From Takakia lepidozioides (taxonomy: Eukaryota > Plantae > Bryophyta), in NCBI GenBank assembly GCA_030704615.1, contig CM060734.1:44888001-44952000 (forward strand): 64,000 nucleotides of DNA. The letters run 5' to 3'. Positions 19,708 to 60,742 of the stretch are shown piece after piece. The stretch's first letter is position 1; every line of letters begins with the position of its first letter. The notes beneath the pieces are model-generated. The model saw nothing but the letters and a program-made list of their open reading frames with translations, did not search any database and was not told the origin of the DNA. The position numbers and the translations under genes were made by a program.

Positions 19708-19873
19708 TGTCGTATGCATACATATCGCTACACAACTACATCGCTGTCCAAAACCACACAACACATGTGCACACCACACACTAGTATACCACTAGTCCAC
19801 CACTAGGCTACAACTAGTCAGTCACTAGGCTGCCACTATGCTGCCCACTATGGCAGTCACTAGTCCACACAAT
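19708..19873 (-). repeat. Terminal repeat B2 (U5-like, 3' terminus)
   Basis: Matches 20193-20382 apart from two extra 12-bp ACTAGTCCAACC units there and a few substitutions. Confidence 0.9.
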
Positions 19874-19874
19874 A

Positions 19875-20190
19875 GATAAAGAAGAAGAATACAAGCACGA
19901 GCTCACAAATCTGAAGCATAAACTCATGCATATATAACCTCATCACTCAAATACAAGTCAAGCCAAGTGCACCCCACGCCATGGGGAATCCAAACTACGG
20001 CGCCATAGCTAGGCGCGGTGAGGCTCAACTCGAGAAAGATGAGCATCCCGCGCTTGCCGTGAAGATAACCACTCCAGGGCCTAAATCTGCCTTGACCCCT
20101 GGATTGACACTTGGGCCAATCCCAAATATCAATATGTAAAAGCTAGCTATTTCCTAGCTAGTTTCACACTAGTGGTAAGATAACTTGACA
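19875..20190 (-). repeat. Terminal repeat A2 (U3/R-like, 316 bp)
   Basis: Direct match to 52832-53147 and inverted match to 19416-19707. Confidence 0.9.
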
Positions 20191-20192
20191 GC

Positions 20193-20382
20193 TGTCGTGC
20201 GCATACATATTGCTACACAACTACATCGCTGTCCAAAACCACACAACACATATGCACACCACACACTAGTATACCACTAGTCCACCACTAGTCCAACCAC
20301 TAGTCCAACCACTAGGCTACAACTAGTCAGTCACTAGGCTGCCACTATGCTGCCCACTATGGCAATCACTAGTCCACACAAT
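20193..20382 (-). repeat. Internal repeat B1, immediately downstream of the PPT
   Basis: Copy of 19708-19873, joined to A2 through the dinucleotide GC. Confidence 0.9.
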
Positions 20383-20391
20383 CGCCCCCCT
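20381..20391 (-). promoter_or_regulatory. Polypurine tract of the DNMT element
   Basis: Minus strand AGGGGGGCGAT directly precedes TGTGTGG at the start of B1. Confidence 0.6.
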
Positions 20392-22537
20392 AGCTGGTGC
20401 TTAGGTCCCTCTAAGTCCAGGTAGCCACAAGATGTGATAGTGACCATAGCCTCACTAAGTCCTCCACCACTATCCCTACTACACTCAAACTCGATAGATC
20501 AAGAGGCCGGGTGCAAGAGTTGCCCCATCGTTAATCGCCATCTTGCAACCTGTGAACTTGAGCTTGGGATCTCATGTATTGACTCCTATGAGCTTGGCCT
20601 CCCATGTCTTCACTAGAAGCATTCGTGTCATTTACCACTGGGGTAACGACTCATTTTGAGTCATAAAAGTCAAAAAACTGGGATCGACTGGAAGTTACAA
20701 CAGACTAGTTACAACAGAAGTGGTAGTTGGGTTGGACATCCAATTATTGGAGTGGTAAATGACACAGACGCACGAACAACTGCTCAGCGATTAATGCGAT
20801 TAATGCTGAAGAACCACGTGGCGTAACCAGGCGGGCCGCCCGTGTGTCTGACCTTTTGGGCTGACTTTGACTTTTCCCTCCGGATGAGTGGACTGACGCA
20901 CCCGGGGTGCGGTGACATATGGACGCGGACGTGGATGCGGACGTGGATGCCGATGTGGCGGCGCCGCGACGAGCGGCAATGCTGCCGCGTGGCCACGAGC
21001 CCAAGACGCCACATTGCAGTCGGCCACATCACTTGGAGTGCTGCATGTGACGTCGCAACAGCCACTGGCGAAGTCAACTGCACAACTTCCGGCAGACGAA
21101 TCCACGGGGACCACGTGGAGAGTGTGTGGGTCAACGCGTGGCGTCGTCCCCACGCAATGGCAGTGACGGGTACGTCTTCTAGTGGAAAGACGCAGAGTGC
21201 TTGTGCCATCTCGGGACTGCTTTGGCCAACTCCGCTGCCACTGTGCTAGTTGGTTGCACTACAGTAGGAAAGCACGAAAAATGAGGACTTGTAGTGTTTT
21301 GTGTGAGTTTCCAACTGACCTGCATTCTAAGCTAAAAATATGGTTCTGATGCATTCTACTGGTTTTAGTGGTTCACCCATATGCAGGGGGAATTGAGAAG
21401 CAATGATATTGGGCGAAACTGAGAACACAGACCACGATGCATGCACAACATCACGCTAATGAACCAAATTAAAGAGGCAACAGGGAGACCAAAGACCATC
21501 ACACATACACATAGAAGGTGGACGGACACGACGACAAGTCAGGAAATGTGATATTACATTCAAATTAGAGACCGTCACAGCACACCTGCATATGAGCAAG
21601 ACTAAATGCCAACATACATGGTTGCCGGACATCACTTAAACTGTCATGGCCCAAATGTTCAAAACTGGTAACGTGAGTATCATACACACTTCTATGAGTA
21701 TCATTACACACCCAACAGGGACTACAAACATGAAATGTCACTTGATACTTTCACTTTTCCTCATACTCTTCTCTGGCCACAGAGTCACCGTGCCTTTCAC
21801 ATGCGCTAGTGTGGTCTGGGGGGGGGCATCGTCCACATTTGGGCAAGGCAATATAACACTTGGAAGCATCTTTCACCTTGTACCACCCGGATCGAATGTC
21901 CTTGCAGTGGAACTTGTCAACCCCGGCTATTCCCACCACTTCCGCCTTGGCGGCGGCTGTCTTTGACCGCTTGTCATGGGGGTTCAGGAGAAACACAGGA
22001 TCTGATATCTGCAGACACCAACATCAGGGTCCACTCAGCAACAAACATAGCAATGACAAGGTGAAAGTCAAGCGCAGCTGGGCATGGAAACGATCTTGGT
22101 TGCCACAATACTGAATCAGCAGCCAATTCACGGTGTACCAACGTACCTTGAAGCGAAGCTCGTCGCTGAGGGTGGCAACTGAGGAAAGCTGCCCACATGT
22201 CTTCAACTGCAGCAGCAAAAAGAGGTTTAGTCAGACGGATAAGAATAACATGAACTCTGGTGGTTGCAATGGTATAAACACACCTCCACGGAGCAAGCTA
22301 ACAAACACCCTGCTCAGACCCTAGCACTACAACTTCCTGGCAAAAATAACCCTACTAAAAACCAGCCAGGCAAAGCAAGGAGCCATGAATGCATGCCTGG
22401 GGAACCACGTCCTGCTGCGATGATGGTGCCGGGAACAGCCCACTCCTCTTGCTCACCTGCAATGAATACACATTGCAACGCTTCAGGAAGTGTATCCATA
22501 AAGGAAACCAACTAAGTAAGTTTGCGGAGAGGGGCTG

Positions 22538-23264
22538 TGTCGCGCACCTCACTTCGGTAAGCTCCCCCTCAAGTCATAGTTACTCGCTTTGATGCGCGCG
22601 CCTGACTCCCAACCTGGCCGCTGGGCCAACTTGGAGCTTCGGCTGCTCACCGGGGCATAACGGTCCCCCTTTGTTCTCCCAAAGAACCCTCCACCGATTT
22701 GGAACCAGCGGGAATTCCCTTTGGTAGTTGGCAGTCCGGAACAGCTCCCCACTCTTTGGTCGCTTTCCGGCTCGCTCGCTTACTCACTAGTTTTTGGTCA
22801 CCAACGGGCTTGCACCGTTCTCGGGGTTACTACTCCCTATATATATTTTTGTAGCTGTCCGCGGGGGTTTCACAAGCAGCCATGCCATTTTATGGCGAAC
22901 CACCACGAAAACCCTCGACTCCCGGTGATGAGTCGCGGTGAGTCTTGGCCCACTCACCACGACCCCTATGGACCGTGATGAGTCCCAAGACTCCCCACGA
23001 CTCCCACCACAAGGTCTCCGCCCCCATGGTGAGTCCTATGCCACCCCCACTAAGTCCCGCTAAGCTACCACCACCCCTTGTGGAGCCACCCCCACCGCAA
23101 CCCGGTGTGCGGGGCTCCACCTAGTGAGCGCCCCCGCCTCCTTGAGTGCCTTGGGCACTCAAGGGTGCTTCAGCCCCCCATACCTATCGCTGCCGCTGCC
23201 CCCACCACAGGGGCAGCCCCTCATGTGTCCCGACCCCCTGCCCTCAAGGCAAAGGGCCGCGACA
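22538..23264 (-). repeat. Complete 3' LTR (727 bp) of the chromovirus, TATA at ~22838-22846
   Basis: TG..CA ends with 7-bp inverted repeats; 22850-23264 matches 28597-29006; preceded by PPT-like GGTAGGGGTGTG. Confidence 0.9.
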
Positions 23265-24169
23265 CACACCCCTACCAACACGGAGTTGATGTCCTCATCG
23301 ACTTGTCCATTTTGTAGAAACGAACATCCAAGTTGTGGCGTCCCACATCAAGGAGTTTGTTTCCGTACCATGGCGTCCCATGGCAAAGAACCAAACCCCA
23401 CACTTGACTCTACTCTCCACTAGCTAGTTCGGCCGACTTCCTCCAAGTCCCGGCCAGGGGTGGAGCATCTCAAGCTCCTCCCAGTGCACTCTTCTTGGCC
23501 TTCTTCAAGGTCAAGGAACGATCCTCCCCAAGGATCGAATCGCCTTACTGCAACAACATTGCTTGCGACCGCTCATGATGCCGCTTTTGGCATCACCTTG
23601 AGCAAGGGTTCACCTGGAACCCTCTTTGACTAGGAAGATAACCTTGAACCAACCGTGCGCCCCAATCACTACAATTGGGTCCGCCTTGGAATGCTGGCCT
23701 GAGGTATGGGAACACGCCGAAGCCGCACTACGACTTCGTCCCGAGGCTACACGATTATAGTACGTGAACGGGAGTACTTAGCTTCCGCGTTAGCCCGCAC
23801 TACAAGGCAACCCCCTCGGTAGCGCAGTTATAGTACGCGCACGCGCCAGGTGCGCACTAGCACGTGAACTCCCAAAGAAGGCGCAAGTTTCCTTGCCCCT
23901 TGGATGGGGGTCACCCGATTTCGGCACTACGCAAATACACGATTAACCCAATTTACCTCTCCCACTTTTATAAGCTAGCATGCATTCTACACACTAGCCA
24001 ACCATACCATGCATCACCATTCCAAACAAAATAGGACGCACAACATTTGGAAGCCATTTCATTTATAGCACGTTTTGTACAATACGAGTTTTTGCAATTG
24101 GATTCCTAAGCTGGCTAAGCCGGGCTAAGCATGCATTTCCTCCCCCACGCTCCAAGGTTGATGTCCCCA

Positions 24170-27100
24170 TCAACGCTTCTTCCGCTTTTGAGGTCGCCCT
24201 TGGAAAGCTGCAACCGGTTCAGATGCGTTACCCATTTCTGAGGCACGCACCCAAGATGCCTCCACATGATGATAGCCCTTCCATTTGACGAGATACTCCG
24301 TTTCTCGGTTCCTGAACCTCCTCGACTTAAGTATTGCCTCCACCTCGTACTCAGGTTCATTTTCATGATCCAACAGCATAGGTGGCGGACGCAACACTTG
24401 ATGCCGATTCGGACGTGCTTCATCTTTGAAGTAAGGCTTCAAAAGGGAGACATGGAATACTGGGTGCACCTTGCTGTTTGCCGGCAGCTCCAATTCATAC
24501 ACATCCTCATTCATTACCTTCCGAATGCGAAAGGGTCCCGCATACGGAGGTATGAACTTCGGACTCACCTCCAGAGGTAGTTGGAAATTCTTGATCTTCA
24601 ACCAGACCTCTGTGCCCGCCTCAAACTTCACTTCCCTCCGCTTCCGATTCGTCTGCCTTTCATACCGTTTCCTAGCTTTGGCAATGTTGTACTTTGCGAG
24701 CTTCAACAAACGCTCGCGTTCTTCCAGTACCGCCGCTACTGCCGGTTCCTCAACGTCCTGGGCGGCCCAACTTGTCGGCACCAGAGGTGCTTTTCCATAG
24801 ACCAATACGAAAGGGGAAACTCCCATTGCGGAGTGTTCTGTGTTATTATAACAGAACTCCGCCGCGTCTAAGTGTTCCACCCAGTCTGTTTGGTCTGCCG
24901 ACACGTAATTCCGCAAGATTTGCTTCACTACGGAATTCACTCTTTCTATTTGGCCGTCGGTCGTAGGTCGGAAGGCGGTGCTCATCTTCAGCCTCGTCCC
25001 CATCTTCTTCCAAAGTGCCCTCCAAAATTTACTCGTAAACTTTGGATCGCGGTCCGAGACAATATCCTTCGGGACTCCATGATGCTTTAAGACGTGGGCG
25101 AAGTAATGTCGCCCTGTCTCCTGCGCCGTTGCCGTCTCTTTGGTGGGGATGAAATGGCCCATTTTACTGAACCTATCCACCACCACCATGATTGCATCGA
25201 ATCCTTTTGACAGCGGCATAGCAGTCATGAAATCCATCGAGACGCTCTCCCAAGTCCCTTCTGGAATCGGCAAGGGCTGTAACATCCCCGCTTGCTTTTT
25301 GTACTCGCTCCGGTTTTGTTGGCATGTGGTGCATGTCTTGACATACTCCTCTGCCTCCTCCCTCAGTTTGGGCCAGAAATACTCTTTCTTCAAGAGTGCC
25401 GCAGTGCGCTTGGCTCCGCCGTGGCCTGCAAGCGGGCTGTCATGGCATTATCTCAAGAGACTATCTCTGATCCCTCCCTTCGGCACGTAGAGGCGCTTTT
25501 GCTTATACCGGAGCAGTCCATTTTGCAAGTGGAACTGCGATTTAACCCCCATCCTCAAGTCTTGCATCACGGACTTCGCCAGCTCATCCTTCTGGCAAGC
25601 CTTCCGGATCTTACTTTGGAGCGTCGTCTCGCCCCTGTATACCAACAGGAGCTGCTGCTTTCTACTTAAAGCATCGGCCACCACATTGTCCCGTCCCGGT
25701 TTGTACTGGATATCCACGTCGAACACCGCCAAAGTATCTTGCCACCTAAGTTGTTTTGGAGACAACTTGGGCTGTGTGGCAAAATACTTCACTGTGACAT
25801 TGTCCGTGAACACCTTCACTGGGTTGGAACCAACATAGTGGTGCCAAAGCTCAAGGCAATGCACCACCGCCTTCATCTCTTTTTCGTGCGTCGGCCATCG
25901 TCGCTCCACTTCATTCAGTTTCTTACTTTCGTAAGCCACTGGACGTCCATCTTGCATAAGTACACCCCCAATCGCGAAGTCCGACGCATCTGTATGAATC
26001 TCAAATGGGCGATCGAACTCCGGGATTTTCAAGACTGGAGCTTCCGCCATCCGCTGCTTCAATTCAGCAAAAGCTTGGCCACAACATGTGTTCCATACCC
26101 AGACTTTGGATTTACACAGAAGGTCCGACAGCGGCCCCGCGATCTTGGCAAAATTTCTCACATACTTCCGGTAATAGGAGGCAAGTCCTAGGAAGGATCG
26201 CACTCCCGGGACCGAAGTCGGAGGCTCCCAGTCCAAGATCGCCCTCACCTTTCTGTCATCCATTTTGATCCCATCCTGTGTAATCACATGCCCCAAGAAC
26301 TCCACTTTCGTGACCCCAAATTCGCACTTTGAAGCTTTGGCGTATAGCTTTCCTTCCCGCAACTTTTGGAACACCCTTTTGAGGTGCTCCAGGTGCTCCT
26401 CCTTTGTTTTCGAGTACACCAAGATGTCGTCGATGTACACGATCACAAAGTCATCCAACCACTCCTGAAAAAGGTTGTTCATCAGCGTGCTAAAGGTCGC
26501 AGGTGCATTGGTGAGCCCAAAAGGCATCACCAAGAACTCATATAAACCATACCTTGTCCTGCACGCGGTCTTCTCCTCATCTCCTTCCACCACCCGAATT
26601 TGATGATAGCCGGAGCGCAAGTCGATCCGGCTGAAATACTTCGCTCCTGCCAACCGGTCGAAAAGGTCGTCGATCCTTGGCAAAGGGTACCGGTTTTTAA
26701 TAGTCACCTTATTCAAAGCCCTGTAATCGACACACATCCGCAGCGTCCCATCCTTCTTGTCTGCGAATAGCACCGGGGCTCCGTAACGTGACTTACTCGG
26801 CCGGATGTACCCCTTTGATATTAGATCCTTGAGCTGAGTCTTCAGCTCAACCAACTCCCTGTGGCTCAACCGGTAGGCTGCCTTGGCAGGCGGTTCCGAT
26901 CCCGGTATCACCTCAATCTTGTGGTCAACTCCTCTTCGCGGTGGCAAGCCGCTTGGTAAATCCTCCGGCATCACATCCTGGTATTTCTCCAAGATCCCCT
27001 TGATCCAATCTGGGCTCGGCTCCCCATCGCCTTCTCCCTTCACTTCTCTAATGTAAAGCAAAAACTGGGGCTCGTGTGCCTCCTCCACGGCCCACTCCCT

Positions 27101-28508
27101 TGCTGACAGAAGGTTTATTCGCCCTCCCACGGATTTGGGCGTTTTCGACACTCGTAAGACCTCGCCACCATTCCCACATGGCAGCGTGACTACTCTCTTG
27201 CGGCCATCTATGACCGCTCCGGATTTGCTCAAAAAGGTCATCCCCAAAATGAGATCCACTCCATCGATCTCGCAGATGGTGAAGTTCTCACGTCCCTCCC
27301 AACTCCCCAGTTGAAGAGGAACATCAAACGCCAACCTTGTCGCCAACTGTGGTTCTCCTTTGGCAGAACGCACCTCAATAGAGGCCCCCACGTCATTTGT
27401 TGGGAGTCCCAACTTTCGCGCTGTCGCCGGCGTCATGAAGGAGTGCGACGCTCCTGTGTCCACCAACAACGACACGTTAGTTCCGGATATTATCCCATCC
27501 ACGAACAATAACTGACTCCATTTACGCAGGGCGCCAGTTTCCTGATACAACTCACAAGAATAGTTGCCTACCTTGCAAGTCCTGGCGACCACCGCTTCCA
27601 CCAAGCGACTGATGGTATCTTCCGACAGCTCCGTGGTTGCCCGAGTCATGTTCAATTGTCGAGGTTTCGTGCACTTCTTGGCCATGTGCCCGGGCTCCCC
27701 GCAATTGAAACACACTCCATCAAAGGTCGCCTTCTGTCCGCCATAAGCCGCTCCACCCGCTTTTCCTTTCGAAGCACCGGGTGCCGCCTTGACGTGTGAA
27801 GGCCCTCCCTTCGATTTCCACGTGCCATTGTCGCCGCGTGGCCTATCCCACTTCTTTTCCGGTCGGAAGGAGTCACCTTCCTGCCGGGTCTTCTTGTGGT
27901 TCAGCTCCGTACGGCCTTGTCTCTCACCCCTAGGGACATCCGAGAAACATTCAGCCCTCTCAATTGCCTCGTTCAAAGTCTTGGGTGGCTTCTCCTCCAA
28001 CTTCCGCCTGGCCCATGGGCCAGTCCCGCCACAAAGTTGAAGACCATTTCTGGTTCTGCCATGTCCGCGACTTGAGCAACAGCACATTGAAAGCCTGGAC
28101 ATACCCCCGAATGTCATCTGTTTGCTTCAAATTCCTCATCTTGTCCCGGGCAAGCCAGGACGCGTTGAGGGGCACAAACTGTCTCTTCATCAATTCGTTG
28201 AACCCACTCGAGTTCAAGGTTTCCGGGCTTGGACCTCGGTCGTGAAGGCGTTTCTGCCACCATTGTTGAGCATAGCCCCTCAAATAGGTGGGAGCCACTT
28301 CCACCCGATCCTCGTCACTCAACTTGGCCGCTCGCAAGTACTGCTCTAGCTCCAGGAGCCAGGTGTTGAGTGCCTTCCAATTTCGGATGCCCTCGAAGGT
28401 GCCGGGTTCCTTAGGCTTCACCTTAAACTTTGCCTTAGTGGAAGTGGCATTAGCCGCCTTCAACACCTCTTTCAACGTCCCGCCAAACTGCGCCAACAAC
28501 CCTTCCAA
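24170..28508 (-). pseudogene. Chromovirus gag-pol: Gag (CCHC), protease, RT, RNase H, integrase, chromodomain
   Basis: [67 protein letters not shown]. In-frame TAA at 25448-25450 in the integrase zinc finger; frameshifts in gag near 28020-28060. Confidence 0.95.
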
Positions 28509-28596
28509 AAGGCTGCCGGCATGGGAAGCATCTCTTGGTTTGTCGGAGCTCTCAAGGATTCCTCGGGCTCCGACTCCTCGGATTCCTCCCGCTCTC

Positions 28597-29006
28597 TGTA
28601 GCTGTCCGCGGGGGTTTCACAACCAGCCATGCCATTTTATGGCGAACCACCACGACAACCCTCGACTCCCGGTGATGAGTCGCGGTGAGTCTTGGCCCAC
28701 TCACCACGACCCCTATGGACCGTGATGAGTCCCAAGACTCCCCAAGACTCCCACCACGAGGTCTCTGCCCCCATGGTGAGTCCTATGCCACCCCACTAAG
28801 TCCCGCTAAGCTACCACCACCCCTTGTGGAGCCACCCCCACCGCAACCCGGTGTGCGGGGCTCCACCTAGTGAGCGCCCCCGCTCCTTGAGTGCCTTGGC
28901 ACTCAAGGGTGCTTCAGCCCCCATACCTATCGCTGCCGCTGCCCCCACCACAGGGGCAGCCCCTCATGTGTCCCGACCCCTGCCCTCAAGGCAAAGTGCC
29001 GCGACA
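28597..29006 (-). repeat. Truncated 5' LTR of the chromovirus (U3 only)
   Basis: Matches 22850-23264 and is then joined directly to gag-region sequence. Confidence 0.9.
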
Positions 29007-29299: not shown

Positions 29300-29900
29300 T
29301 CCCACATTCAAGCTGCCAGTCGGGGTCAGCTTCTGCGTGCTTGTGAAGACACGCACATCCTTGGAGCAAAACAAATCTTGGCAGTAGGGCCAGACTGTTT
29401 CTAAAAGGTAGTCTGAATCGGGCCCCTCACTGACATTGCCAGTGACATCAAACGACAATGGATGGACCATGTTCAAAGGGGAGTTCCCCCTCCCCTTGTG
29501 TGGTGAATCATCCACTAGGAGGGTGTTGGATTCGTTAAATCCAGAAAATTCCAACCACACCCTCGACAGTCTCTTCTGTAAGTTCTGTACGGCAGCCCTT
29601 TTGTGGGGTGTGGCTCTGTCAAGGGGTCACACTCCTCTTGTGACCACACAAAGAGGGGAGAACCCTTGACCCCCTGCATGACCACTTTGAAGATGTCTGC
29701 AACATTCCCCTTGGAAGCACAGGACCATATCCCAACGTAGAAATACCGGAAGAGAAGGTTTAAAAACTCGCAGACCTGGGGCCTTGGGAAAACATACTTG
29801 TTGGTGGTCAACACCCATGGCCAATGACGCCTCGGGTTGGGCTGAAAGTTAGGAATAGAGTGGCACAGAATCCCGTTCAGGTCTAGAACAATTAGTTTCG
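29300..29900 (-). pseudogene. FCP1/NIF (HAD-superfamily) phosphatase-like domain, frameshifted
   Basis: KLIVLDLNGIL, VFPRPQVCEFL..FYVGIWS, LFVWSQEEC, NTLLVDDSPHKG. Confidence 0.8.
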
Positions 29901-41120: not shown

Positions 41121-41929
41121 GCGATGCCACTCAATGGCACTATGAACGTTTCGAGCATGCTGTCAGAAAACTAGACGGGCAAAAACCCAATTCAGCAGCC
41201 TCACCTTGCGTGGATACTTGGGAATTGATGCCAGAAGGGCATGCCCGTATGCGCGCTCCATCGTGCCTCCATCCAGCACATTCTGTAAATGATGAATGAC
41301 CAAGACCCCGATGTCACACCGTTCTGAGAAGCCACTACGCGCGCTCACAGTATACGAAGGCCTTGCCGTGTCAGGATTTCCATTCCCACGTCCCGCCATG
41401 TCCGACGCAGCACTTGCATCCTTGTCTCTGCCAGGTGGAGGCAGCACGTATTAAAATATCTATTCCCCCAAGGCCACATTTTGTTTACCTCTTTTTGTGA
41501 AAGCCACGTCAGCAAATGTGCTGCCGAGTCATGGGTGCAATGAATGCGCAGTGGTTCATGGAGTCGTTGAGTCGACTACATATTCACTTTAATGAATAAA
41601 TATCTTTATTCCATTAATCGAATTAGGAAAGAAAATTTGTAGTCGCATGTGCAGTAATTACAACCACTTGTAATTTTGGCTTTTTCAAATTTTATGTATT
41701 TACGCAATTCGTAAAATAGCCCGGAATTCTGCTACGACTCCGGAGTCGTTGACCCCACTTCTGTCCGCCGTCTGAAATGCCCCCGTGGGCCCACATTGTC
41801 TGTTTCGACTCTCCAGTAGTCCCGTTTACTACCAAGTGGTTCCCGGAGTGGTCGCGGACATGCAGTCGAATCGGAAAAGACACTGATGCTAACAAGCTTG
41901 TTAGCTGCCTCCAGTCATGTCCACTGCCA

Positions 41930-42565
41930 CTATCCCAAGCAGTGTGGACACAACCAATCTCCGTTAGGAACCTTCTCAAGAGGTGGTGTCAAGCATCCCA
42001 TATGCCAACCCCTTGAGCATCGATCACACACCAGCATGGTGGCTGCCCCTTTGGCAGACCCACAGAGCATGCACCTCAAACCTGCAGGTACCACTGCCAA
42101 GTTTGGGTCAACTCTGCCATCGACATTGGGAAGGTGACATAGCGCACAATTACGCACATGGTCCTTCCAAGTCATGCCATCCCGACCCTCCAAGATCAGG
42201 ACCCCTGAGGGCAACACCTCTCGAACCCTCAGAATAACACGCCCTGCAGTAACATCCAGAGTCGTAGGAGCAGTCTGCTGCAAATAAACATAGTCACCAG
42301 GGCTAAACCTCCGAACCCCAGGACGATATCCTCCACCACGTATAGTGGCATACCTCAACGTATCACGGTGCTGTGCAATGGCAAGGTTCTCAAAAGCCAT
42401 GGGCATGACTTTCTTGAACAACTCTGTACGCTGATCACATGCACGTACCCACACGTCCGGATCGTCAAGGTTAAGGACTTGAGCAGTGTCCCTACGAATG
42501 GCTGCAGGCAAATCCGGCTCTCGGCCAAAAAGAAGGAAATATGGTGAGAAGGAGGCAAGTGACAA
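41930..42565 (-). pseudogene. Integrase C-terminal region with PHD finger (DNMT element)
   Basis: FSPYFLLFGREP (end of the rve core), FSPGDYVYL, CMLC..MLVCDRCSRGWHMGCLTPPLEKVPNGDWLCPHC (C4HC3). Confidence 0.88.
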
Positions 42566-42799
42566 GAAGTCAAGGTCGGCGTGGCCGAATGCATGGTAGG
42601 TGAACATGAATCAAGATGATCTTTATAACAATGGACAAGAGTACAAAATACTGGAACTCGACTCGGATACTGGAATGCTGGAAACTGGACTGGATACTGG
42701 AAGCTGGACTGGAGTACTGGACTTGGAACAAGAGTAGCTTGAACTTGTGTTGGCGAGACTGAAGAGTGTCCAGTCTCACCTTCTATATATACTGGCTAC

Positions 42800-43680
42800 T
42801 AAGATGCTTCCCCAATGTACGAAATACTCAAGACGTTTATACTTGATGCGAGGGTCTAGGACTTCGTCGACTTCATACTCAATTTCCTGATTGACTTTGA
42901 TTGGTGGAGGTGGTACGGAAACTCTCCCTGGAATATTCGATGGATGATACAACTCCAATAGTGAAACATGAAAGACTGGATGGATGCGCATATTTCGTGG
43001 GAGTTCCAGCCGAAAACTGACCGGATTTATTTGTCGAATAATTTTGAAAGGTCCCAGGCGTTGATAATCCAACTTCTTTGATGGTCGCGAGGTTTGTATG
43101 TCCCGTCGAAGAAGCCACACACGATCTCCGACCTTGAACTGGGGTTGGAGTTGGCGACGTTGATCTGCATACTCCTTGTATTGTTTTTGAGCTTCTGCGA
43201 GGTGGGATGTAAGCTCCTTGTGAATCGTAGCAACATGAGTAGCAAGGTTTTTTGCAGCAGGGCTTCCAGCAGTTTTCATGTGGACATGGTTTACTCGAGG
43301 ATGATCACCATAATTGGAGAAAAATGGAGTTTGTTTGGTCGAAGAATGTATAGTGTTATTGTAGGCAAACTCAGCCACTGACAGAAGGTCCGTCCAATTA
43401 TCTTGGTGATAATTTATCGTACAGCGAAGATACTGCTCCAAACTCTGGTTTACACGTTCGGTTTGACCATTAGTCTGTGGATGATGAGCTGTAGAGAGGT
43501 TGATCTTAGTATCCAATATGTGAAATAACCCCCTCCAGAAATTTGATATGAACTGTGGTCCTCGATCAGAAACGATGTCCTTCGGGAGTCCATGAATGCG
43601 GTAGATATTATTGAGGAAGAATCTTGCAGTTTCCTCGCCGGTAACCGTTTTATTACATGGAATGAAATGTGTCGCATTGA
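42800..43680 (-). pseudogene. Fragment of a second chromovirus integrase and the start of its chromodomain
   Basis: HFIPC..IVSDRGPQF..STAHHPQTNGQTERVNQ..LGPF..IHPVFHVSLL..EYEVDEVLD..YFVHW; sequence distinct from the 24170 integrase. Confidence 0.88.
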
Positions 43681-43795
43681 ATGCAAAATACGTACTGCTT
43701 AATAAGCACGAGTGCGAAACCATTGAACTACCGTTATCGTTCTGGCATCATAATTGTTATTTGTAATTCGTTTTTACTCATCCCTACTTTGATCA

Positions 43796-45130
43796 ATGCA
43801 GCAAGAACTGGCAGAGGCAGCTGAGACGGGGAAATCCGAATACTACCGCACTACAACAGAGGAACTTAGGACATCAAAGGGTGTGGAGGCAGCAATAAAG
43901 AAGGAGTATGAAATCCGGAGAACCAAACTGATGTCCGCCTTCTCTAAGCAGCTTAGAATAGTAGATCCTAGCCTTGGAGAGGAGTTCCTTCTGCAGATCA
44001 AATCTCACTATGACAAGCATGTGCACCCGGAGATGCAGCAGGAGAAATTGCACCGGCTGGCCATCTCCATGGTTGACCCCCAAACCAAAATTAGATGGTT
44101 GGAGATTTGGAACTCAGATCAGACAGTGAAGGACTTGAATCAGGTCCCTAAGAGCACTATACAGCCTGGCACAAAGGTGGAGGGAATCAGTGATATTGTG
44201 TTTGACAACTGACTTCACAAGGCTACATTTTGGAGTCAGGTGTGTATTCATTGAAGTTTCATCTTTGTTGACTTCATGAATGTAATGACTAACTTATTTG
44301 CAAAACTGACAAATGTACCCTTTGCAGCTGAAGAAGCGCGCCATCCTTGTGCTCGAGCAGAATTTGAAGGACTTGAATATTTCTATTGTTTCCCCGCCTC
44401 AAATGACATTGGAGGCATACATCAGAAAGTGGAGAGGTCTCACTTGGCGATACTGTTTTTTCCGGGAGTTTTCGAAGGATGGTAACATTTTGCGGTCCAA
44501 CAACTTTGACAGTCAGGTTGGGGGGGAGTGGGCCATGATGCGAGTTGTGTACAATTGCATTTCCAACTAGAAACTATATTGCATCTTGTGAGAAATCCTT
44601 AGGCGTTGTTAGAAGGGCTCTTCACTGATAGGAGGTGAATGTCGGTGCCGACATTCACTTCCATGGCTGTGAGCCCCTATGGACAGAGATTTCATTCACA
44701 TGGATTAGGGAACTTAGGGTGTGTTGGCAGTGTTCTTGAATGGAATTTTGTGAATGTCGTTGACGACCATCACATCCAAAGCTATTGTGAGCTTCTATAC
44801 CGAGAGATTTCTTGTACGTTTTCTAGGGTGCCCAATAGTTATATGCAGTGTTACTCTCACGAATTTTCTGAATGTCGGTGCTGACATTCACTTTGAGAGC
44901 AATGGGCTTCTGCATAGAGAGATTGATTTCCAATTTGTCTCGTGGTTTGCAGGTACACAAAATATGTGCTGATGGATGGAAATCACCTCAGTGGTGTCCC
45001 AGATTATCTTGACATGTGGTCGGACCCGGGAAACGATCCAACCATATATACTTCAGGGATATTGAAGGACTGGAGTCCTGCACACTTTGTCAAGGACGAG
45101 AACATGACAGAACACAAACAAGAGATCAGA
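43796..45130 (+). other. Unidentified spliced gene-like fragment
   Basis: 138-aa ORF plus exon-like segments with AG/GT sites (about 44329-44515 and 44953 onward); no family recognised. Confidence 0.3.
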
Positions 45131-45134
45131 CTAG

Positions 45135-45788
45135 ACTCCTCATGGGCATGCCGCACTAACCGTGCACGCTGTGTGGGGTGAGGCACAATCCTCACCCGAC
45201 CATCCTCCCACACTCGAAGTAGGTGTATCCCCTCCCACTTGAACCTCTTGGCTCGTTGCAGGATCCGATCCCTCTCCCTGGCAGTCACAGTGGCTGTCGT
45301 GTCTCCCTTGCGGAGGTAGTCCAACACAGCCAAATCCTCATGTATAACTCTGGCACCACCTGGCTCATCACTAGCCTCAGGGTCCTCAGACACTCCGTCT
45401 ACAGTCATCCCTGTTGTAGGTCCAACCTGACCTCCCGATGCCAAGATACACAAAAATGCAGATGCGTACCATCCCGACACCATCTCCTCGTCCGTCTCAC
45501 CATACCACCGAGCTCCAGTGTCATCCTGCTAGCTCGTGCATGGATTGCGACTCAATCCATCCGCATCCCGATTGACCAAACCCGGTTGATGCACAACCTG
45601 AACATGTCTCTCATGCTCCTCCACCATAGCATGAGAGGCAAAGCAATTCCTGTAAGCCTCAGGAACCGCCGTATACGTCGTCTCTCTCCTCTAGTGACAA
45701 TAGGTCCATTGTTAGGCTCCCAATTGCCCTTCGTAACTGCAACCTTAAGTCCAGCAAACTTAGAGGTAGAGGACGCGTCCCGTGGTTG
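45135..45788 (-). pseudogene. Deleted RT/RNase H remnant and integrase N-terminus (DNMT element, - copy)
   Basis: Aligns to 57078-58979 with two large internal deletions; retains DADGLSRNP and RLVRHAHEE. Confidence 0.85.
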
Positions 45789-46016
45789 CTATGCCGCAAC
45801 CTCTTGAGCAGTACTCCCTGCCTGCTCAGTCAATGACAAGGCCTCATCCTGCCCCATCATCTCATCCTTGAGGACCTCCTCAACCCGAGAAGAATCCCCA
45901 ACCTCATCCATTACAGCCGCCTTGGCTGCCAACTCCCTCTGAACCTCGAGCACCTCCCACGTGTGCCATGGATGCATGCACCCTGTGGTCCTCACATGCT
46001 CGCCCCCACTCACTGC

Positions 46017-47360
46017 CTATACCGTCTCGGTAGGCAGAGAGACCATCAAGGGAAGTGTACTCCACACTCTGTGTTGCTCAGCCATAGCCAAGCTGATAAT
46101 CCAGGTCAAGCAATTGAGATCCATTGTTTGCCCCAACACTTGACGACGTGATGCCTCAGAAAGAGACGACACTGCCGTGATACCAGTGGTAAAACCCATA
46201 GCCCACTCTCGCTCGTCGGCATTAGGCTCCACTAACTGTTGCAACTGAGCATCCCACAGGAGGCCAGGTCCGCTATCCCGGAAAGCATGCGATCCTGGGA
46301 AGCTGAGCAGTGTAGGTAGTGCTGCTTGTGGTCGACCCACCTTGTTGACCACTGCCAAAGGCGAACGGTCATCGTGTCTCACACACTGAGACTGCCTCCC
46401 TGTGTCCAAAATGCTATCCACTGTGAGGTGTGCTGGCCGCTGCACCCCATCAAATGCACGCTTAAGCAGTGCGGGTGACATCAAGTTAGTCCACCATAAC
46501 TGTGGACGATGAGCCCGTGACCCCACTGCAACTGCATCCAGCAACACTGCTGACCCAAGCCATGACCGGACTTGATGCACACTGGCCATCACCCTGGTCC
46601 AAGAATTGCCCATCAGTGGTACATTCTCCAAGATGTATGCTGGAGATACAGCTTGATGAAGCTGCAAGTGGCGCAAAACCCGCACCATCACCCAAAACAG
46701 ACCCGACCTCGAGTCTCGCAATCCATTGCCATGCCCGGCTGATGAATGCCCTTGGCAGGGCCAACCTGCCACTACCAGATCAATGGAGCCAACCCGCTCC
46801 AAATCCTGCGCCCCCCACAACGAAATGTTTTCTGGCAAAGCCTGCTGATATCCACGAATTGCAGAAACCGACAACAACTCAGGGTACCGCTGCACCAACT
46901 GAGCAACATGGCGAAGTGAAACACGTCGTGCAGTCTCATCCCTCTCCACATACAGGTAACGCCGAACTCGTACACCTGCTTGTAACACAGCAGCCAATCC
47001 GGTGCTGATCCCGCCAAACAAGTCCAGAAGACAAATCCCTTCATCCGGATACTGCCACACAATAGGTGTGGTGTCCAATGGAGACAACTGAGGTGGTCCT
47101 GGTGCAATCCCCGCACTCTCATCCTCTCCTGACGGTACAAAAGCCTCCACCCAGGCTTGTTGCACCCGTCGATCAGCATCCCGCTGCAAATCCTTGCTCG
47201 TGCCCCACAATGGAGTCTGAGCAACCATGGTAGGCAACTCCGCCATACCATACATGTCATCCTGCTCTCCCGGAGGTGGCACATCCTCTGAATGAGCGTT
47301 GCCCTCAAGCAACTCTCTAGGCCAACTCACTGCCGCTATGAATGCTGCTAGTGTCGGCAT
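46017..47360 (-). CDS. DNMT3-like C5 cytosine DNA methyltransferase domain of the retroelement polyprotein (domain uninterrupted)
   Basis: Motif I LDLFGGIS, II YVERD, IV AGWPCQGHS, VI ILENV, VIII RAHRPQLWWTN, IX EREWAMGF, X RRQVLGQ. Confidence 0.92.
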   Translation of the reverse strand: MPTLAAFIAAVSWPRELLEGNAHSEDVPPPGEQDDMYGMAELPTMVAQTPLWGTSKDLQRDADRRVQQAWVEAFVPSGEDESAGIAPGPPQLSPLDTTPIVWQYPDEGICLLDLFGGISTGLAAVLQAGVRVRRYLYVERDETARRVSLRHVAQLVQRYPELLSVSAIRGYQQALPENISLWGAQDLERVGSIDLVVAGWPCQGHSSAGHGNGLRDSRSGLFWVMVRVLRHLQLHQAVSPAYILENVPLMGNSWTRVMASVHQVRSWLGSAVLLDAVAVGSRAHRPQLWWTNLMSPALLKRAFDGVQRPAHLTVDSILDTGRQSQCVRHDDRSPLAVVNKVGRPQAALPTLLSFPGSHAFRDSGPGLLWDAQLQQLVEPNADEREWAMGFTTGITAVSSLSEASRRQVLGQTMDLNCLTWIISLAMAEQHRVWSTLPLMVSLPTETV

Positions 47361-47366
47361 CTTGCC

Positions 47367-49932
47367 TCATTGGGCAACCGCAACTCCTCCTCTAAACGTC
47401 ATAGGGAGCTGCACACGCCGGCCATCCCTTAACTGCCATGCAGGCCTATAGAAAGCTGACTCCTCCCAAAAATCGAGGGTGAAGCCCATGGGATACAACA
47501 CTGCCCTACCAACCAGGACATCGTATGAGACCGCGTCTGTCACAATGGCCTTGGCTCGCATCACTGAGCCATCTGTAGGGTGATCCGGCCGTAGTCTGAT
47601 AGCCAACTCACGCCGTGTCATGCCCGAGCCTGCTCCGATCCTCCTAGAGACGTCTGTATCTGGAAAGGACAAGGCTCCATATCCGCCTCCGTGAGGCCCA
47701 AGCCTGCAATAGCAGCTCTGCCCAGCATCAATGGCTGAGCTCCCGAGTCCAACAAGACCCGCAGTGGCCGGTACCTCTTGCCTGCCGGTCCACTCAAACA
47801 GAAAATGTCATCCTGGTTGTCTAACATGACAACTCCAGGTGTCACCATGGCGCGCTCAATGGCTGGCCTAGCTGGCAGCTCCATCAACCTGGCAGCTGCA
47901 GCTTGCCATGGCGCCGCCGTGGCAGTCTTGACCCTCAAATCCGAGGATCCCTCCGGCACTACACCTCCCACTATCTCCGCAGAAGATGAAGTAACCTTCC
48001 CACTATCACAGAGTGTAGCTGCCAGCCTGAACACCTCAGCTGGTCTTACCCCCGGCGTCGCAATCATGGTAGCCGAGAACAATGGAGCCTGGCACATAGA
48101 TGTGGCCGCTCATAGCAGCACACTAGCTGCCGTAGCCTTAGCAACACTAGGTAGTGGTGCTACCCGTGTAGCTCTCCCCAATGACATAGTAACCTCCGCC
48201 TCGGTAACAGTCGGGCGAGAACTATGTACCATGGATGGCGTCGACACTGTCTCCGCCAATGTGAATGACTGAGGAAGCCTAGCCTGATGGCTTGCCTCCC
48301 CACGCTGTGGATCCAACTCCACCTCTATACCTCGTGGCTCAAGAACTCGTGCTGCTCCTCGAGTCACGGCTGCAGCAGACTCCACCTGCACTAGTGGTAG
48401 TGCTGCTCCACACATGAATCCCATGCCTCCCATATCTCCTCCCTCAGGAGGTGGACCATCCGGCCTTAGAGCCGGTACCACCTGAGCTGTAGTCATGGCA
48501 GCGAGCCTCTGCTCTAGCTGCTGAAGCCGGTTGGCCATGCCTTGGTCAACACCCTGACCTCCGCGTCCTTGGCCATGTTGAGCTTGCCCTTGGCCTGCAC
48601 CTCGTGGCTGGCCACCTCGCCCCCGGCCACCATTGTTCCCTTGGAACTGGCCTGGGCGCAACTTAGGATGCAAACCATAACACTGGGCCTCTCCATGCCC
48701 GTGCTTGCCACAATGCCTACACTGCAACTGTGCAGGCTGTGCATATGCCGGCCCTTTGCCTCCCTCTGAGCAATCCTTCTTGACATGGGGTCCTCCACAT
48801 GTCCAGCACACCACATCCGCCGTTGTTGGCCAGCAATGAAGGGAGAGACCCCTGCATCTGAGGTCCTCTCTGCCCTTCCCTGAGCTTCACATGAGCCCCC
48901 TTGTTGCCTTGAGCACGTTGAGGTAGTGGTTGGCTAGGAGCACCACTACCCCGTGGTGTCTCCTTAGCAAATCCCACCATGACCACTCGTTCCTCCACCA
49001 TGTTGAGCTCTATCCGCTCTGCCAGCAAACACATTTGCTAAGGTGGGTTGGGCGCTTGTAGGAGAGTTGCATCCCGCACCCTTCTCCTTAGCTCCTTGTC
49101 CAATATCCCATACCAGAATTGGACTGCCTGAGCTTCCGTAACCCCTTGGTTACATTTATCAAGCGCCTCATGCGAGTGAAAGCCTCCCTCATGCTCTCGG
49201 TCGGCTTCTGTTGGAACTCTTGCAAGCTCCGCAACTTCTCTGTCCTCACCCCTTGGTAGTTCCCTCTCAATTCTTCGAAGAACTCCACAACAGGGTTGAA
49301 GGCAGGCACGGGTACTAGTGCTGGTGTGGTAGTGGCTTGGGTGGATGTCGTAGCTACTGTACCACCAGTCCCACTAGTCCCACTGCTACTCACTGAAGCT
49401 GCCGGTGCAGCGGCAGGTGTAGCCACTGCCCTCGTGGCTCTAGTGCCCCTAGTGATGGAGACATAGTCGGTGACCAGTACATCCTCCACTCCTCGATCTC
49501 AACCTCATGCCCCCGCCTGAACTCATGGTAATCATCCATAGGCGGCCCCTCAAGGTGCTGAAACAGCCCCTTCCATGCCATGAAAGGCGTAAATAGTTGT
49601 GGATTGCGCATTTGCTGCAAATCACACCAACTATCAAACTCTTGGATAAAATCATCCAACTCGATGGTGCCCACCGCCCCAGAGTACCTTCGTGGCCCCT
49701 TGGTAGCTCCATACATCTCCTCCATTGTGTCCCACAACAATGGCAAAGAAACAACTTGCACCGCCGGTATGAGTCCTCTTGATTCACAATCCGAATCAGA
49801 ACCTTCCGTAGAAGACACAGGAGGTGAAGGTGGCCTAAACCGCACACCTTGTCTCGTGTACCCACTAGTATCGCTAGCGCTCGAACCGGCACTGTCCCCA
49901 GCAACTAGTGGCACCTCCGTGTTGACACTCAA
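47367..49932 (-). pseudogene. Gag (two zinc knuckles) and aspartic protease of the DNMT element, with frameshifts and stops
   Basis: YSGAVGTIELDDFIQEFDSW, FQQKPTESMREAFTR, CWTCGGPHVKKDC, CRHCGKHGHGEAQC, VLLDSGAQP, YDVLVG. Confidence 0.85.
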
Positions 49933-50169
49933 CCGTCATGAATATGTCCCTAACCCCCTCTCCACAAGGTAACCGGGTAGAGAACCTGTTGCGGCTTATG
50001 GTTTGGAATACTAAGTTCCTAACATAGCCTACACCTGTACTTGCATGACCATGGTATATCATGAAGATACTCCTCAAACCGCCCTCCACGAGCTTCAAAA
50101 TTCGGCCTTCAAGACCACATGCCAGTCCTTAGGCAGTCCACTAGTGCCTCCACGAGTCAGCACAGGCCG

Positions 50170-51250
50170 TCCACAGGTCAACCGGGCCACCACAGACCAG
50201 CACAGGCCCCACAGCTCACTGGTCACAGCCGTCACAGTCCCACAGGCCACTGGGCACAGCCTGTCACGGCCTGTCACAGCCCCACAGGCCACAGGGCACA
50301 GCCCCGCACAGCCGTCACAGTCCCACAGGCCACTGGGCACAGCCTGTCAGCCTGTCACACCCACAGCCCACAGGCCACAGGGCACAGCCCCGCACAGCCC
50401 GTCACAGCCCCAAAGGCCTCAGGCACGGCCTTCACAGCCCTCACAGCCCCTCACAGCCCTAAAGGCCGGGCACAGGCGGCACAGCCCCCACAGCCAAAGG
50501 CCTCAGGCACGGCCTGACATAGCCCCTCACAGTCCGTCACAGCCCCAAGCCTCAGGCACGGCTTGTCACAGCCCCTCACAACCCCTCACACCATGCCCCA
50601 CAGGCCCACTGGGCACAAGCCTGTCACAGGCCCCTCACAGCCCGTCACAGCTTGCCACACCCCTCACAAGCCCCCAGGGCCTCAGGCACGGCCTGTCACA
50701 GCTTCTCAACAACAGCCCATCACAACAGCCCCAAAGTCCCTCAGGCACGTCCCTCAGAACATCCCGTCACAGCCCGTCACAATATCTTGCCACAACAGGC
50801 CCCTCACCAGCCACCACAGCCCCCAAGGCCTTAGGCAACGGCCTGTCACAACTTCTGCTCACAGCCCGTCACAGCCCCAACGGCCTCAGGCACGGCCTGT
50901 CACAGCCCACTCACAACCCATCACAGCCCCAAAGGCCACGGGGCACACACATCCTGTCCACAGTCCCTCACAGCCCGCACAGCCCAAAGCCTCAGGCCGG
51001 CCTGTCACACATTCGCCCCTCAACAAACCCCTCACAAAGACAAAGCCCCAAAGGCCATGTGCACAAACCGCCGATCACAAGATCACACACACAGCACAGC
51101 GCCCTCCAAATCACAATCCCCTCCAACATACCCCAGCCCCCACAAGCCACTGGCACAGCCTGTCACAGCCCCTCACCAATCCGCCAGAGGACCCCCTTCA
51201 CACCCGCTCCGACGGCCCCCGGCAACACGCCCTCACAAACCACACACAAA
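50170..51250. repeat. Degenerate ~10-bp-based tandem array (GTCACAGCCC / CACAGGCC) in the element 5' leader
   Basis: Visible periodicity; mirrored at 54470-54940. Confidence 0.9.
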
Positions 51251-52831
51251 AGCCCCATCCATGGCCGCTCTGGCAGTTTAGCCATTTCTCCAAGGGGTTT
51301 AGCCACGCCAAGCTAGGGTTGTGTCTCTTGGACTCTAGGCTTCTTTCCACCGAGCTATGGCGGCTGTGAGGAAATCAGCAAGGTCTTTCGGCTCCCACAC
51401 AAACCACCCATAGTAGCCCTAAGCCATGAGGTGGTTGCCCACAAACCAAGCCTTCTTTCTCACTTAGCCTCCCCAAACCACCGCCACTAAACTCAATGGC
51501 AAACAACCAAGGCCCTGTGGTTCCCAGCCCTTGTGAACACTCATTCAAGCTTTCTCCTTGGCCATAGCATCTGTCTTAGAGCCTATTCTAGCCCTCTACA
51601 CCTGCTGCTTCAAGAGTTGCACTCCCTTCAGCTTGAAGTTGAACCCCAACTCACATAGGCCCTACAAGTGCTTTTCTTTCATTTCAAGTGGAAACCAGCC
51701 CTAGACCTTCCGTTCTAGCTCTCTAAGCTTGAAAACAAGAGCCTCAATGGCTGAAGGCATGCTCCACACATGCCCTAACTCTCACCATAAGAGAAATCAG
51801 CTCCTTTGCTTCATTTCTTGCACCCACAAACCTGAAAATACAAGCTTCAGCAGGTTGAAAGCATGCTCCACATGCCCTACAGGGAACCAGCCCTTCCTTC
51901 CTTTCTTGCACTCTCCAACACCTGAAAGTGCAAGCCTTCACCAGGCTGATAGCATGCTCCACACATGCATTGCCCTCACATAAGGAAGTCAGCCTTCCTC
52001 TCCTTGCTTGCCCTCCAAGCTTGAAGATGGAGCTTCAATGAGCTGAATACATGCTCCACACATGCAACCTCTTCACACAAGAGATATCATCCCCCTATCT
52101 TTGGCTCCTTGGCTCCTTGATGCTCTCTAAGACAAAGACTAGGACTCCACACTTTCCACAGCCCTTGCCAAGCTCCTGAAACCCTAAGGCTATATTTCCA
52201 GCCACAAGACACTCCTCTTGTGGTGCAAGAACTTTTCTCCAAGCTCTGAAACCCTAGGTGCACATTCCAGGCTTTGCCGCACCTCTTAGCTCCTGTTCCA
52301 GCCCCGCTCTTGGCCATGGCAAGAGTCCTCATACGCTAGAGTTTCAGATTGAACCCCCAACTCAACATAGCCACAAATGCATTGGCTTGCATACAAGAGA
52401 AATCAGCCATCTCTTTTCACTCAGACCTCCTTATGAGCTTGAAGTTGGAGCTCTCCCGATAACTGTGACGTAGATTTAACACCCTCGTAGCCTCCACATT
52501 GCTGCACTCCTTACTTGGCCCTGCAGCTGAAGAGACGACCACCAGTTCACCCCACTCGAGAACCAGCATCTCCCCCGCTTCACACTAGAAGCCCAAACTT
52601 GGTTGCCATAGCATTGAGCTATGCAACGCCGCTCTTCAACATAGACTCTACCCTTCCAACCCCTCTCTATCCATTGCAAACCTGCAACCTGTTCGCCTTT
52701 GCACTCTATCCACTTTGGATAGGCTCATGCACGGATCCCTGCACTCTAGGCTGAACCGCTTCTCATGAAAACACAAGTGCTACAAGCACTCGAACCTGGC
52801 ACTCATATACTCGAGCTGATCTTTCTCAAGT

Positions 52832-53147
52832 GATAAAGAAGAAATACAAGCACGAGCTCACAAATCTGAAGCATAAACTCATGCATATATAACCTCATCA
52901 CTCACATACAAGTCAAGCCAAGTGCACCCCACGCCATGGGGAATCCACACTACGGCGCCATAGCCTAGGCGCGGTGAGCCTCAACTCGAGAAAATGAGCC
53001 TCCCGCGCTTGCCGTGAAGATAACCACTCTCCAGGGCCTAAATCTGCCTTGACCCCTGGATTGACACTTGGGCCAATCCCAAATATCAATATGTAAAAGC
53101 TAGCTATTTCCTAGCTAGTTTCACACTAGTGGTAAGATAACTTGACA
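52832..53147 (-). repeat. Terminal repeat A1 (5' terminus; TATA-like TTATATAT at ~52885-52892)
   Basis: Begins TGTCAAG on the minus strand; matches A2; not followed by B. Confidence 0.9.
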
Positions 53148-60660: not shown

Positions 60661-60742
60661 CTGACTGTTTCAACTACATAATTTCTCCAATTCATTATCT
60701 AACGTTCTTGGGACATGGTATAGCCCAAGCTGCACTACAGAG

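Follow-up and report, generated by a model that had tools for sequence, protein, structure and literature searches.

We analysed a 64,000-nucleotide (nt) stretch of contig CM060734.1 of Takakia lepidozioides (the window; all coordinates are window positions), which contains two nested copies of one retrotransposon family. The inner copy is a defective Ty3/gypsy element with about 12 kb of its own sequence, carrying a Dnmt3-type DNA methyltransferase (DNMT) and a C-terminal PHD finger. It is inserted into a terminal repeat, A, of an older, outer copy, and a CACTA transposon has since split the inner copy in two. The inner copy is bounded by split direct repeats, with A at the 5' end and B-A-B at the 3' end, and such A...B-A-B ends, shared by relatives, are the normal genomic form of the family. 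It is very likely that this split-repeat layout is combined with integrase-type insertion. The best overall explanation, to which we assign a probability of roughly 0.6, is a Ty3/gypsy element of the kind described as KnitGypsy-Dnmt3, whose inserted DNA is a permuted form of the reverse transcription product.

The inner copy lies on the minus strand in the order A1 ... polypurine tract-B1-GC-A2-T-B2, starting with TGTCAAG and ending with ACGACA. Its terminal parts are the following.

52832-53147, minus strand: A1, the 5' terminal repeat, beginning TGTCAAG; 96.9% identical to A2 over 316-319 nt
20383-20611, minus strand: 3' untranslated region ending in the polypurine tract AGGGGGGCG (20391-20383); conserved in relatives
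20193-20382, minus strand: B1, whose first base directly follows the polypurine tract; last bases ...GCACGACA
19875-20190, minus strand: A2, linked to B1 via GC; palindrome GACAGCTGTC at 20187-20196
19708-19873, minus strand: B2, the 3' terminal repeat; the element end ...ACGACA lies at 19708 and is followed by the A of the outer copy, inverted

The boundary between A1 and the leader falls at 52832/52831, and the B1-A2 junction reads ACGACA-GC-TGTCAAG. B1 and B2 are 96-99% identical, apart from a 24-nt indel within a 12-nt internal repeat, and the length and identity of the A and B repeats far exceed chance. A1 presumably holds the promoter, R and U5. The repeats, the TGTC...GACA ends and the flanks GCTC/ACTC on the plus strand had already been reported in a preliminary description of this DNA, and all were confirmed; on the minus strand the flanks read GAGT/GAGC and agree in three of four positions.

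The same description treated A1 and B1-A2-B2 as the ends of a single gag-pol element. They do belong to one element, but the 33 kb between them proved to be a nest of elements and not a single gag-pol body, and the visible integrase and gag-pol sequences come mostly from nested foreign elements. The unity of the copy follows from a Logan assembly contig (L005), about 90% identical to the window copies, in which DNMT, reverse transcriptase (RT), RNase H (RH), integrase (IN) and PHD finger follow each other without interruption. In this contig the sequence of window position 41920 is joined directly to that of 20610, which bridges the 21.3-kb insert.

The outer copy, on the plus strand, consists of the parts listed below.

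19416-19707, plus strand: A' of the outer copy, interrupted where the inner copy inserted; identity to A1 and A2 95-96%, with a TGTCAAG start after an unrelated flank
53156-58990, plus strand: continuation of the outer copy, with the remainder of A' (53156-53186), a segment resembling a primer-binding site (PBS; 53187-53203), the leader and then pol
55166-56840, 57087-58670 and 58739-58990, plus strand: outer-copy pol, comprising protease (PR)-DNMT, RT-RH and the integrase zinc finger, respectively, after which the copy breaks off

It had previously been noted that a second copy starts at TGTCAAG (19416) and has A without B. This was borne out, but the copy is more than a stray A, since it continues at 53156-58990. 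Because it resumes at 53156 with A and then the same leader, two independent copies run from A into the leader without an intervening B. The outer copy lacks about 2.25 kb of gag, shows the domain order PR-DNMT-RT-RH-IN(Zn), and is 90.6% identical to L005 over 3.5 kb. At the insertion site in its A repeat, GAGCTC is found on both sides (19702-19707 and 53156-53161), which is not a clean 4-bp duplication; 8-10 extra nt (ACTCGCAT..) adjoin the 5' end of the inner copy at 53148-53155, the figure being 10 in comparison with an uninterrupted A.

Relatives compared with the window copies were those of Calypogeia fissa (CBCUJL010000032.1, L004; a second Calypogeia locus is L002), Sphagnum (L006) and Riccia (L007), as well as two metagenomic contigs, L009 (ENA ERZ25067493 ctg159469_5x_c, 1-18357) and L010 (ENA ERZ25039523 contig_43623). 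The Calypogeia copy L004 reads AGGT/TGTCACACGG (A) ... polypurine tract/B-A-B-A-B ...GCACGACA/AGGT, and the Sphagnum copy ATTC/TGTCATGACC (A) ... polypurine tract/B-A-B ...GCACGACA/ATTC, where slashes mark the joints. Both are thus bordered, outside TGTC...GACA, by perfect 4-bp duplications (AGGT and ATTC, respectively). In the Riccia copy the polypurine tract is followed by B-A-B at the 3' end, and the 5' A is absent; the truncated Calypogeia locus L002 still has the end ...GCGCACGACA. Two identical full long terminal repeats (LTRs) are not present: the 5' end consists of A only, and the 3' end of B-A-B or, in L004, B-A-B-A-B. The layout therefore recurs in Calypogeia, Sphagnum and Riccia, and is a property of the family, not a one-off rearrangement.

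The 3' end of L004 (15454-16429) contains one unit more than that of the window copy. Its three units are equally diverged (97-98% alike), so the third is not a recent duplication, and variation in unit number seems to arise on insertion.

The 10-nt palindrome GACAGCTGTC is present at every B/A joint. The conserved joint reads ...GCACGACAG/CTGTCA..., i.e. GACAG/CTGTC, and the palindrome was also found in the distant metagenomic contigs L009 and L010, where its presence by chance (one hit per 20 kb) is very unlikely. The last approximately 45 nt of B are nearly invariant between liverworts and Sphagnum, and the same holds for the approximately 45 nt that end in the polypurine tract in the window, L004, L005, L006 and L007.

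Several other loci were set aside. Two Marchantia loci (L003, L008) and the Calypogeia locus L002 are too degraded or truncated to serve as two-ended copies, and two contigs with the order RT-RH-DNMT-IN-PHD (L011, L012) are uninformative on layout, as no long-range repeats occur within them. L009 encodes an intact DNMT-gypsy polyprotein of 2358 residues in a head-to-tail 8262-bp repeat, the units of which are 99.8% identical and contain one B/A palindrome each; it was excluded as layout evidence, since a one-LTR circle, a tandem array and an assembly loop are indistinguishable there. In L010, the stretch at 8592-9940, upstream of the open reading frame (ORF), contains a variant A and then B-A, and that at 17146-18801, downstream, B-A-B plus the variant A; one of the palindromes has lost 5 nt, and this is followed by part of A in inverted orientation.

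The proteins of the family are those of an integrase-bearing element. The DNMT frame of the inner copy has 3169 homologues in a representative library, many of them within polyproteins of 1300-3400 residues. The full order is gag-PR-Dnmt3-RT-RH-IN(HHCC, DD35E)-PHD; RVT_1, RT_RNaseH and RT_RNaseH_2 are followed by Integrase_H2C2 and rve in P0012, P0013, P0015, L005 and L007, which is the Gypsy-type Pol order. Pfam analysis distinguished two arrangements: (i) CCHC-PR-DNMT-RT-RH-H2C2-rve(-PHD), as in the window, and (ii) RT-RH-DNMT-H2C2-rve-PHD. In the outer copy, L005, L004, L006 and P0012, PR precedes the DNMT and RT follows it; in L004 and L006, gag-pol takes up the coding space. The HHCC residues of the integrase and its D, D and E, with 35-residue spacing, are invariant across the family, L005 included, and no Phage_integrase (tyrosine recombinase) domain was found in any scanned ORF of the window or relatives. 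Insertion by an integrase, already proposed in the preliminary description, is supported by the intact DD35E and HHCC motifs of the relatives, the lack of a tyrosine recombinase in these ORFs and the 4-bp duplications in L004 and L006.

Close relatives occur in Calypogeia fissa, Marchantia polymorpha, Riccia sorocarpa and Sphagnum species, more distant ones in Closterium, Scenedesmus and Monoraphidium, as well as in many metagenomes. The family appears to be ancient and widespread in green plants and algae.

Neither a tRNA gene nor a tRNA-type PBS was found in the window, the latter in line with the earlier observation. The further claim of PBS-independent replication was not supported: in four lineages, A is followed immediately by 12-20 nt complementary to a segment inside it, 150-195 nt before its end, which fits self-priming. 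The two segments of the inner copy are as follows.

52815-52831, minus strand: leader segment ACTTGAGAAAGATCAGC, adjoining A1 and resembling a PBS; complementary at 15 of 17 nt to A2 positions 147-163
52984-52999, minus strand: inner segment of A1, GCTCATTTTCTCGAGT, just before a conserved TTGAGCC and complementary to the leader after A (A2 equivalent at 20028-20044)

This complementarity was judged against 2000 shuffles per lineage, of which 0-4 matched; the individual values are given below.

Outer window copy: 17/17 complementary; 0/2000 shuffles
Inner window copy: 15/17 complementary; 3/2000 shuffles
Calypogeia: 12/12 complementary; 1/2000 shuffles
Sphagnum: 14/15 complementary; 0/2000 shuffles
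Metagenomic contig L010: 20/20 complementary; 0/2000 shuffles

The paired sequences differ completely between lineages while their complementarity is retained, i.e. the pairing covaries. When the presumed 5' RNA of three relatives was folded, the pairing closed the domain in each minimum-energy structure. An invariant GTTGAGCCT closely follows the inner segment in three bryophyte relatives, and a TATA box, GGGGTATA, is found 27-31 nt upstream of that segment, which is presumably both the 5' end of the transcript and the self-primer. Self-priming resembling that of Tf1 appears probable from these sequence features.

Self-priming has been described for Tf1/Sushi elements and predicted for the plant Tcn1 (in mosses) and TAR lineages (PMC6317226), a paper whose text contains no occurrence of either DNMT or PHD. 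Like Tf1/sushi and Tcn1 elements, the family studied here has no tRNA-type PBS, and the segment that follows U5 would pair with what are presumably the first bases of its transcript; those elements, however, have two ordinary LTRs. In L004 (7000-7022) and L006 (5893-5918) the primer segment in A is preceded by its own inverted copy, giving a local hairpin such as TTAGAGAACTAG-TT-TAGTTCTCTAAG; no such hairpin is present in the A of the window.

The edges of the repeats obey simple rules. B begins at the base after the polypurine tract in the window, L004, L006, L007 and L010, and A ends at the base before the PBS-like segment in the window, L004, L006 and L010 (L007 has no 5' A). These are the edges of plus- and minus-strand priming, and the unit of reverse transcription is therefore B+A. 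At the A/B joint the last base of A abuts the first base of B; the fit is exact in L004, L006, L007 and L010, while the window copy has one additional T between them. There, the two ends of a full-length DNA appear to have been joined head to tail. The inserted ends, on the other hand, lie at the palindrome between B and A and bear the TG...CA signature. Since they are located there and not at the ends of reverse transcription, the genomic copy is a permutation of the reverse transcription product.

The sequence suggests the following route. Transcription would start inside A1, about 30 nt past the TATA box, and the 5' end of the RNA would fold back onto the leader and prime minus-strand synthesis as in Tf1. 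Ordinary strong-stop transfers would produce DNA with the repeat unit B+A, and a head-to-tail A/B joint could be formed via a two-LTR circle or by end-to-end template switching. The integrase may then take the inner palindrome, and not the ends of reverse transcription, as a paired attachment (att) site, and the inserted DNA would be the permuted A...B-A-B. A two-LTR circle, or a right end extended by template switching, would give exactly this form if cut at the palindrome on the PBS side.

Cleavage of a tandem-LTR intermediate at the palindrome is a tentative proposal, to which we give somewhat less than an even chance. It is chemically plausible, because the integrases of foamy virus and HIV-1 have been reported to cut palindromic LTR-LTR junctions in vitro (PMC1180852, PMC1905944). 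In these viruses a palindrome of two abutted att ends (...CA..TG...) is cut into insertion-competent ends, and the same step is proposed for GACAG/CTGTC in the family. In retroviruses, however, the palindrome is the joint of the reverse transcription ends and the route is at most secondary, whereas in the present family the B+A unit contains the palindrome, and every genomic copy retains the A/B joint. A still more speculative extension, which we rate a little lower again, is that the recognition sites of the integrase have moved from the reverse transcription ends to the inner palindrome, and that insertion obligatorily proceeds through a tandem-LTR (circle-junction-type) intermediate cut by the DDE integrase, a natural 'circle junction as att site' route. 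If true, this route has been stable since before the moss/liverwort split, and it could explain the DIRS-like look of an integrase element. The model concerns the action of an integrase on an internal att-att site.

The most serious competitor, although we regard it as unlikely, is DIRS/PAT-like reverse transcription with an added integrase: an RNA running from inside A1 to inside or beyond B2 would be copied with the B1-A2 joint as a bridge by which the missing ends are regained, and the resulting linear A...B-A-B cDNA would be inserted by the DDE integrase without a circle or internal cleavage. The layout indeed matches that described for PAT, Ngaro and SymbioDIRS, and both the strong conservation of the B/A joint and the lack of an A-B-A...B copy among the four 5' ends seen agree with bridging. 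What bridging does not need is a polypurine-tract edge at the left of every B, the terminal one included, or a PBS-like edge at the right of every A, and yet both are found. Moreover, the conserved self-complementary leader fits a normal PBS position, and no primer site is available beyond B2, as the flanks differ between copies.

The remaining alternatives are far less probable. Apart from the present case, only tyrosine-recombinase retroelements are known to have split direct repeats, which might point to a recombinase provided in trans by true DIRS/PAT elements and to an own integrase that is irrelevant; perfect 4-bp duplications and TG...CA ends are, however, marks of DDE integrases, the integrase triad is conserved across a wide family, and the scanned ORFs contain no Phage_integrase domain, which makes this reading very improbable. 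Equally improbable is insertion as an ordinary B+A...B+A element converted later to A...B-A-B by recombination. Unequal exchange between LTR units can alter their number, and L004 does have an extra unit; nevertheless, the duplicated target bases directly flank the start of A and the end of B in two species, none of the four copies has a 5' B, and the extra unit of L004 is no younger than the others. A local accident or assembly artefact (a rearranged two-LTR element at 19.4-20.4 kb, or A1 and A2 from different copies) might be suspected in a dense transposon nest in which A1 and A2 are 33 kb apart and a second copy abuts B2, but it is the least credible of all, given the same order and junction sequences in Calypogeia, Sphagnum and Riccia assemblies and metagenomic contigs, the DIRS-like layout published for Klebsormidium nitens, and the fit without loss of both halves across the CACTA insertion in L005.

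Several observations weigh against the permuted-insertion explanation that we prefer. Circles cut at either palindrome predict A-B-A...B copies about as common as A...B-A-B, but all four 5' ends seen are plain A, with no A-B-A...B among them, and therefore some bias in the choice of palindrome must be assumed. The start of transcription, the fold-back priming, the formation of the A/B joint and the use of the palindrome by the integrase are inferred from sequence. Only two complete relatives with clean flanks were examined, the flanks of the inner copy itself agree in just three of four positions and are accompanied by 10 unexplained extra nt, and the extra units on both sides of the L010 ORF do not fit simply. 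Both window copies are defective, so they give no indication of current activity. Finally, the comparison with KnitGypsy-Dnmt3 was made with the published description of that element.

The preliminary description knew of no described case of split repeats in an integrase element. There is, however, a precedent: KnitGypsy-Dnmt3 of K. nitens, an LTR Gypsy element with Dnmt3 embedded in its Pol (de Mendoza et al. 2018, Nat Commun 9:1341, PMC5890265), was published with a DIRS-type repeat structure and Gypsy-type domains, according to the legend of Fig. 4c of that paper. As described there, it shares with the present family a Dnmt3-type DNMT in a Gypsy Pol and A-coding-B-A-B repeats. The host here is a bryophyte-grade land plant, with relatives of the element in liverworts and Sphagnum. 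Priming, end sequences, duplications and the origin of the layout are not treated in the parts of the paper covered here; the term 'target site' is absent from its text and supplements, and 'LTR' from its supplements. In the literature searched, the name KnitGypsy-Dnmt3 appears in no other paper, and no description of DNMT-Gypsy elements in bryophytes was found. The named homologue matches included no K. nitens protein or locus.

Beyond the remark of 2018, the present analysis adds junction rules: the polypurine tract marks the start of B and the self-priming site the end of A, the A/B joint corresponds to abutted reverse transcription ends, and the B/A joint is a conserved palindrome. With these rules the mechanism becomes testable.

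The family shares A1...B1-A2-B2 split direct repeats with PAT, Ngaro and DIRS-type elements (TOC1, SymbioDIRS-Dnmt3), some of which bear a DNA methyltransferase as well. Elements of the latter types encode a tyrosine recombinase, whereas the family has a DD35E integrase, TGTC...GACA ends, 4-bp duplications and RT-RH-IN domains of the Gypsy type; DIRS, PAT and Ngaro elements are not known to make a target-site duplication. Both the definition and the detection of LTR retrotransposons rely on a pair of identical LTRs, and split repeats usually cause an element to be classed with the tyrosine-recombinase type. The family breaks the two-LTR rule yet keeps a DDE integrase and target-site duplications, and annotation tools based on LTR pairs may therefore miss or misclassify it. 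Its own Dnmt3 and PHD finger bear on the relation between transposons and host chromatin silencing.

The coding body of the inner copy and the elements nested in it were analysed as assembled, the broken frames of the element copies being searched piece by piece, with no spliced models involved. The following features were identified.

50094-52814, minus strand: leader, including arrays of approximately 10-nt repeats; aligns blockwise with the outer copy at 53155-55029
49063-49686, minus strand: gag-like region with broken frames; 73-76% match to the gag region of Calypogeia L004, and a weak Retrotrans_gag match at 49091-49498
47394-47875, minus strand: aspartic protease region; tblastn matches to the protease part of polyproteins P0012 and P0002, and a weak Asp_protease_2 match
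46020-47366, minus strand: Dnmt3-type cytosine-5 DNA methyltransferase, an open frame of 449 codons; Pfam DNA_methylase, with motifs FGG, PCQ and ENV
45602-45632, minus strand: point of the RT-RNase H deletion, with about 1.28 kb missing; the outer copy (57234-58513) and L005 have RT-RH there
45135-45360, minus strand: remnant of the N-terminal zinc finger of the family integrase; tblastn matches to P0013, P0015, P0022 and P0025, and 90% to L005 3026-3493
42563-45134, minus strand: foreign block of 2.57 kb in place of the integrase core; L005 3493-4092 has no counterpart in the inner copy
41920-42562, minus strand: C-terminal part of the integrase and PHD finger (Pfam PHD), the end of pol; 89% to L005 4092-4734, and tblastn matches to P0013, P0015 and P0022
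20612-41896, plus strand: nested CACTA DNA transposon of 21.3 kb, foreign to the element; Tnp2 transposase at 35507-39582 (Pfam Transposase_21, DUF4218, DUF4216)
22850-29006, minus strand: complete chromovirus-type Ty3/gypsy element inside the CACTA transposon; LTRs at 22850-23264 and 28597-29006, 97% identical

The surviving parts of the inner copy's own sequence are thus the gag-like sequence, the protease, the open DNMT frame, the integrase zinc-finger remnant and the PHD end. The best matches of its DNMT among solved structures are DNMT3A and DNMT3B. Pfam scans of the broken frames at 43750-46020 gave no matches, because the RT-RH of the inner copy is deleted there. The leaders of both copies contain arrays of approximately 10-nt repeats, GGGCTGTGAC-like on the plus strand, at about 50094-51000 and 54440-54900.

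An integrase fragment of chromovirus type, which includes SH3_Tf2-1 and the beginning of a chromodomain, lies in the foreign block. Its ORF at 42779-43747 was considered as the element's own integrase and rejected, as it is 38% identical to the integrase of the nested chromovirus compared with 25% to the family integrase, and has the chromodomain start.

The inverted terminal repeat of the CACTA transposon, CACTAGAAGCATT, begins at 20612, and AAG is present on both sides of the insert; at the other end the first approximately 7 nt of the CACTAGAAGCATT repeat are missing, and the 5' boundary of the insert has no clean CACTA end. The ORFs of the chromovirus nested in it encode gag, PR-RT-RH and IN-chromodomain. 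The CACTA transposon also contains an RVT_1 fragment (32035-33837, plus strand) and a NIF-phosphatase-like fragment (29515-30018, minus strand).

Host genes in the window, namely a 3-ketoacyl-CoA synthase gene and dirigent genes (beside the CACTA transposase), identify it as plant DNA. The 3-ketoacyl-CoA synthase ORF (8826-10451, minus strand), of the FAE1/KCS type, is uninterrupted, 77-81% identical to bryophyte proteins, and adjoins the transposon nest, as does a HhH-GPD glycosylase-like host gene fragment (1610-2056, plus strand). An inverted duplication of 1.8 kb (4754-6531 and 60412-62181; 92.9%) bears a dirigent-like ORF of 284 codons in each arm, and its two arms enclose the entire transposon-rich region.

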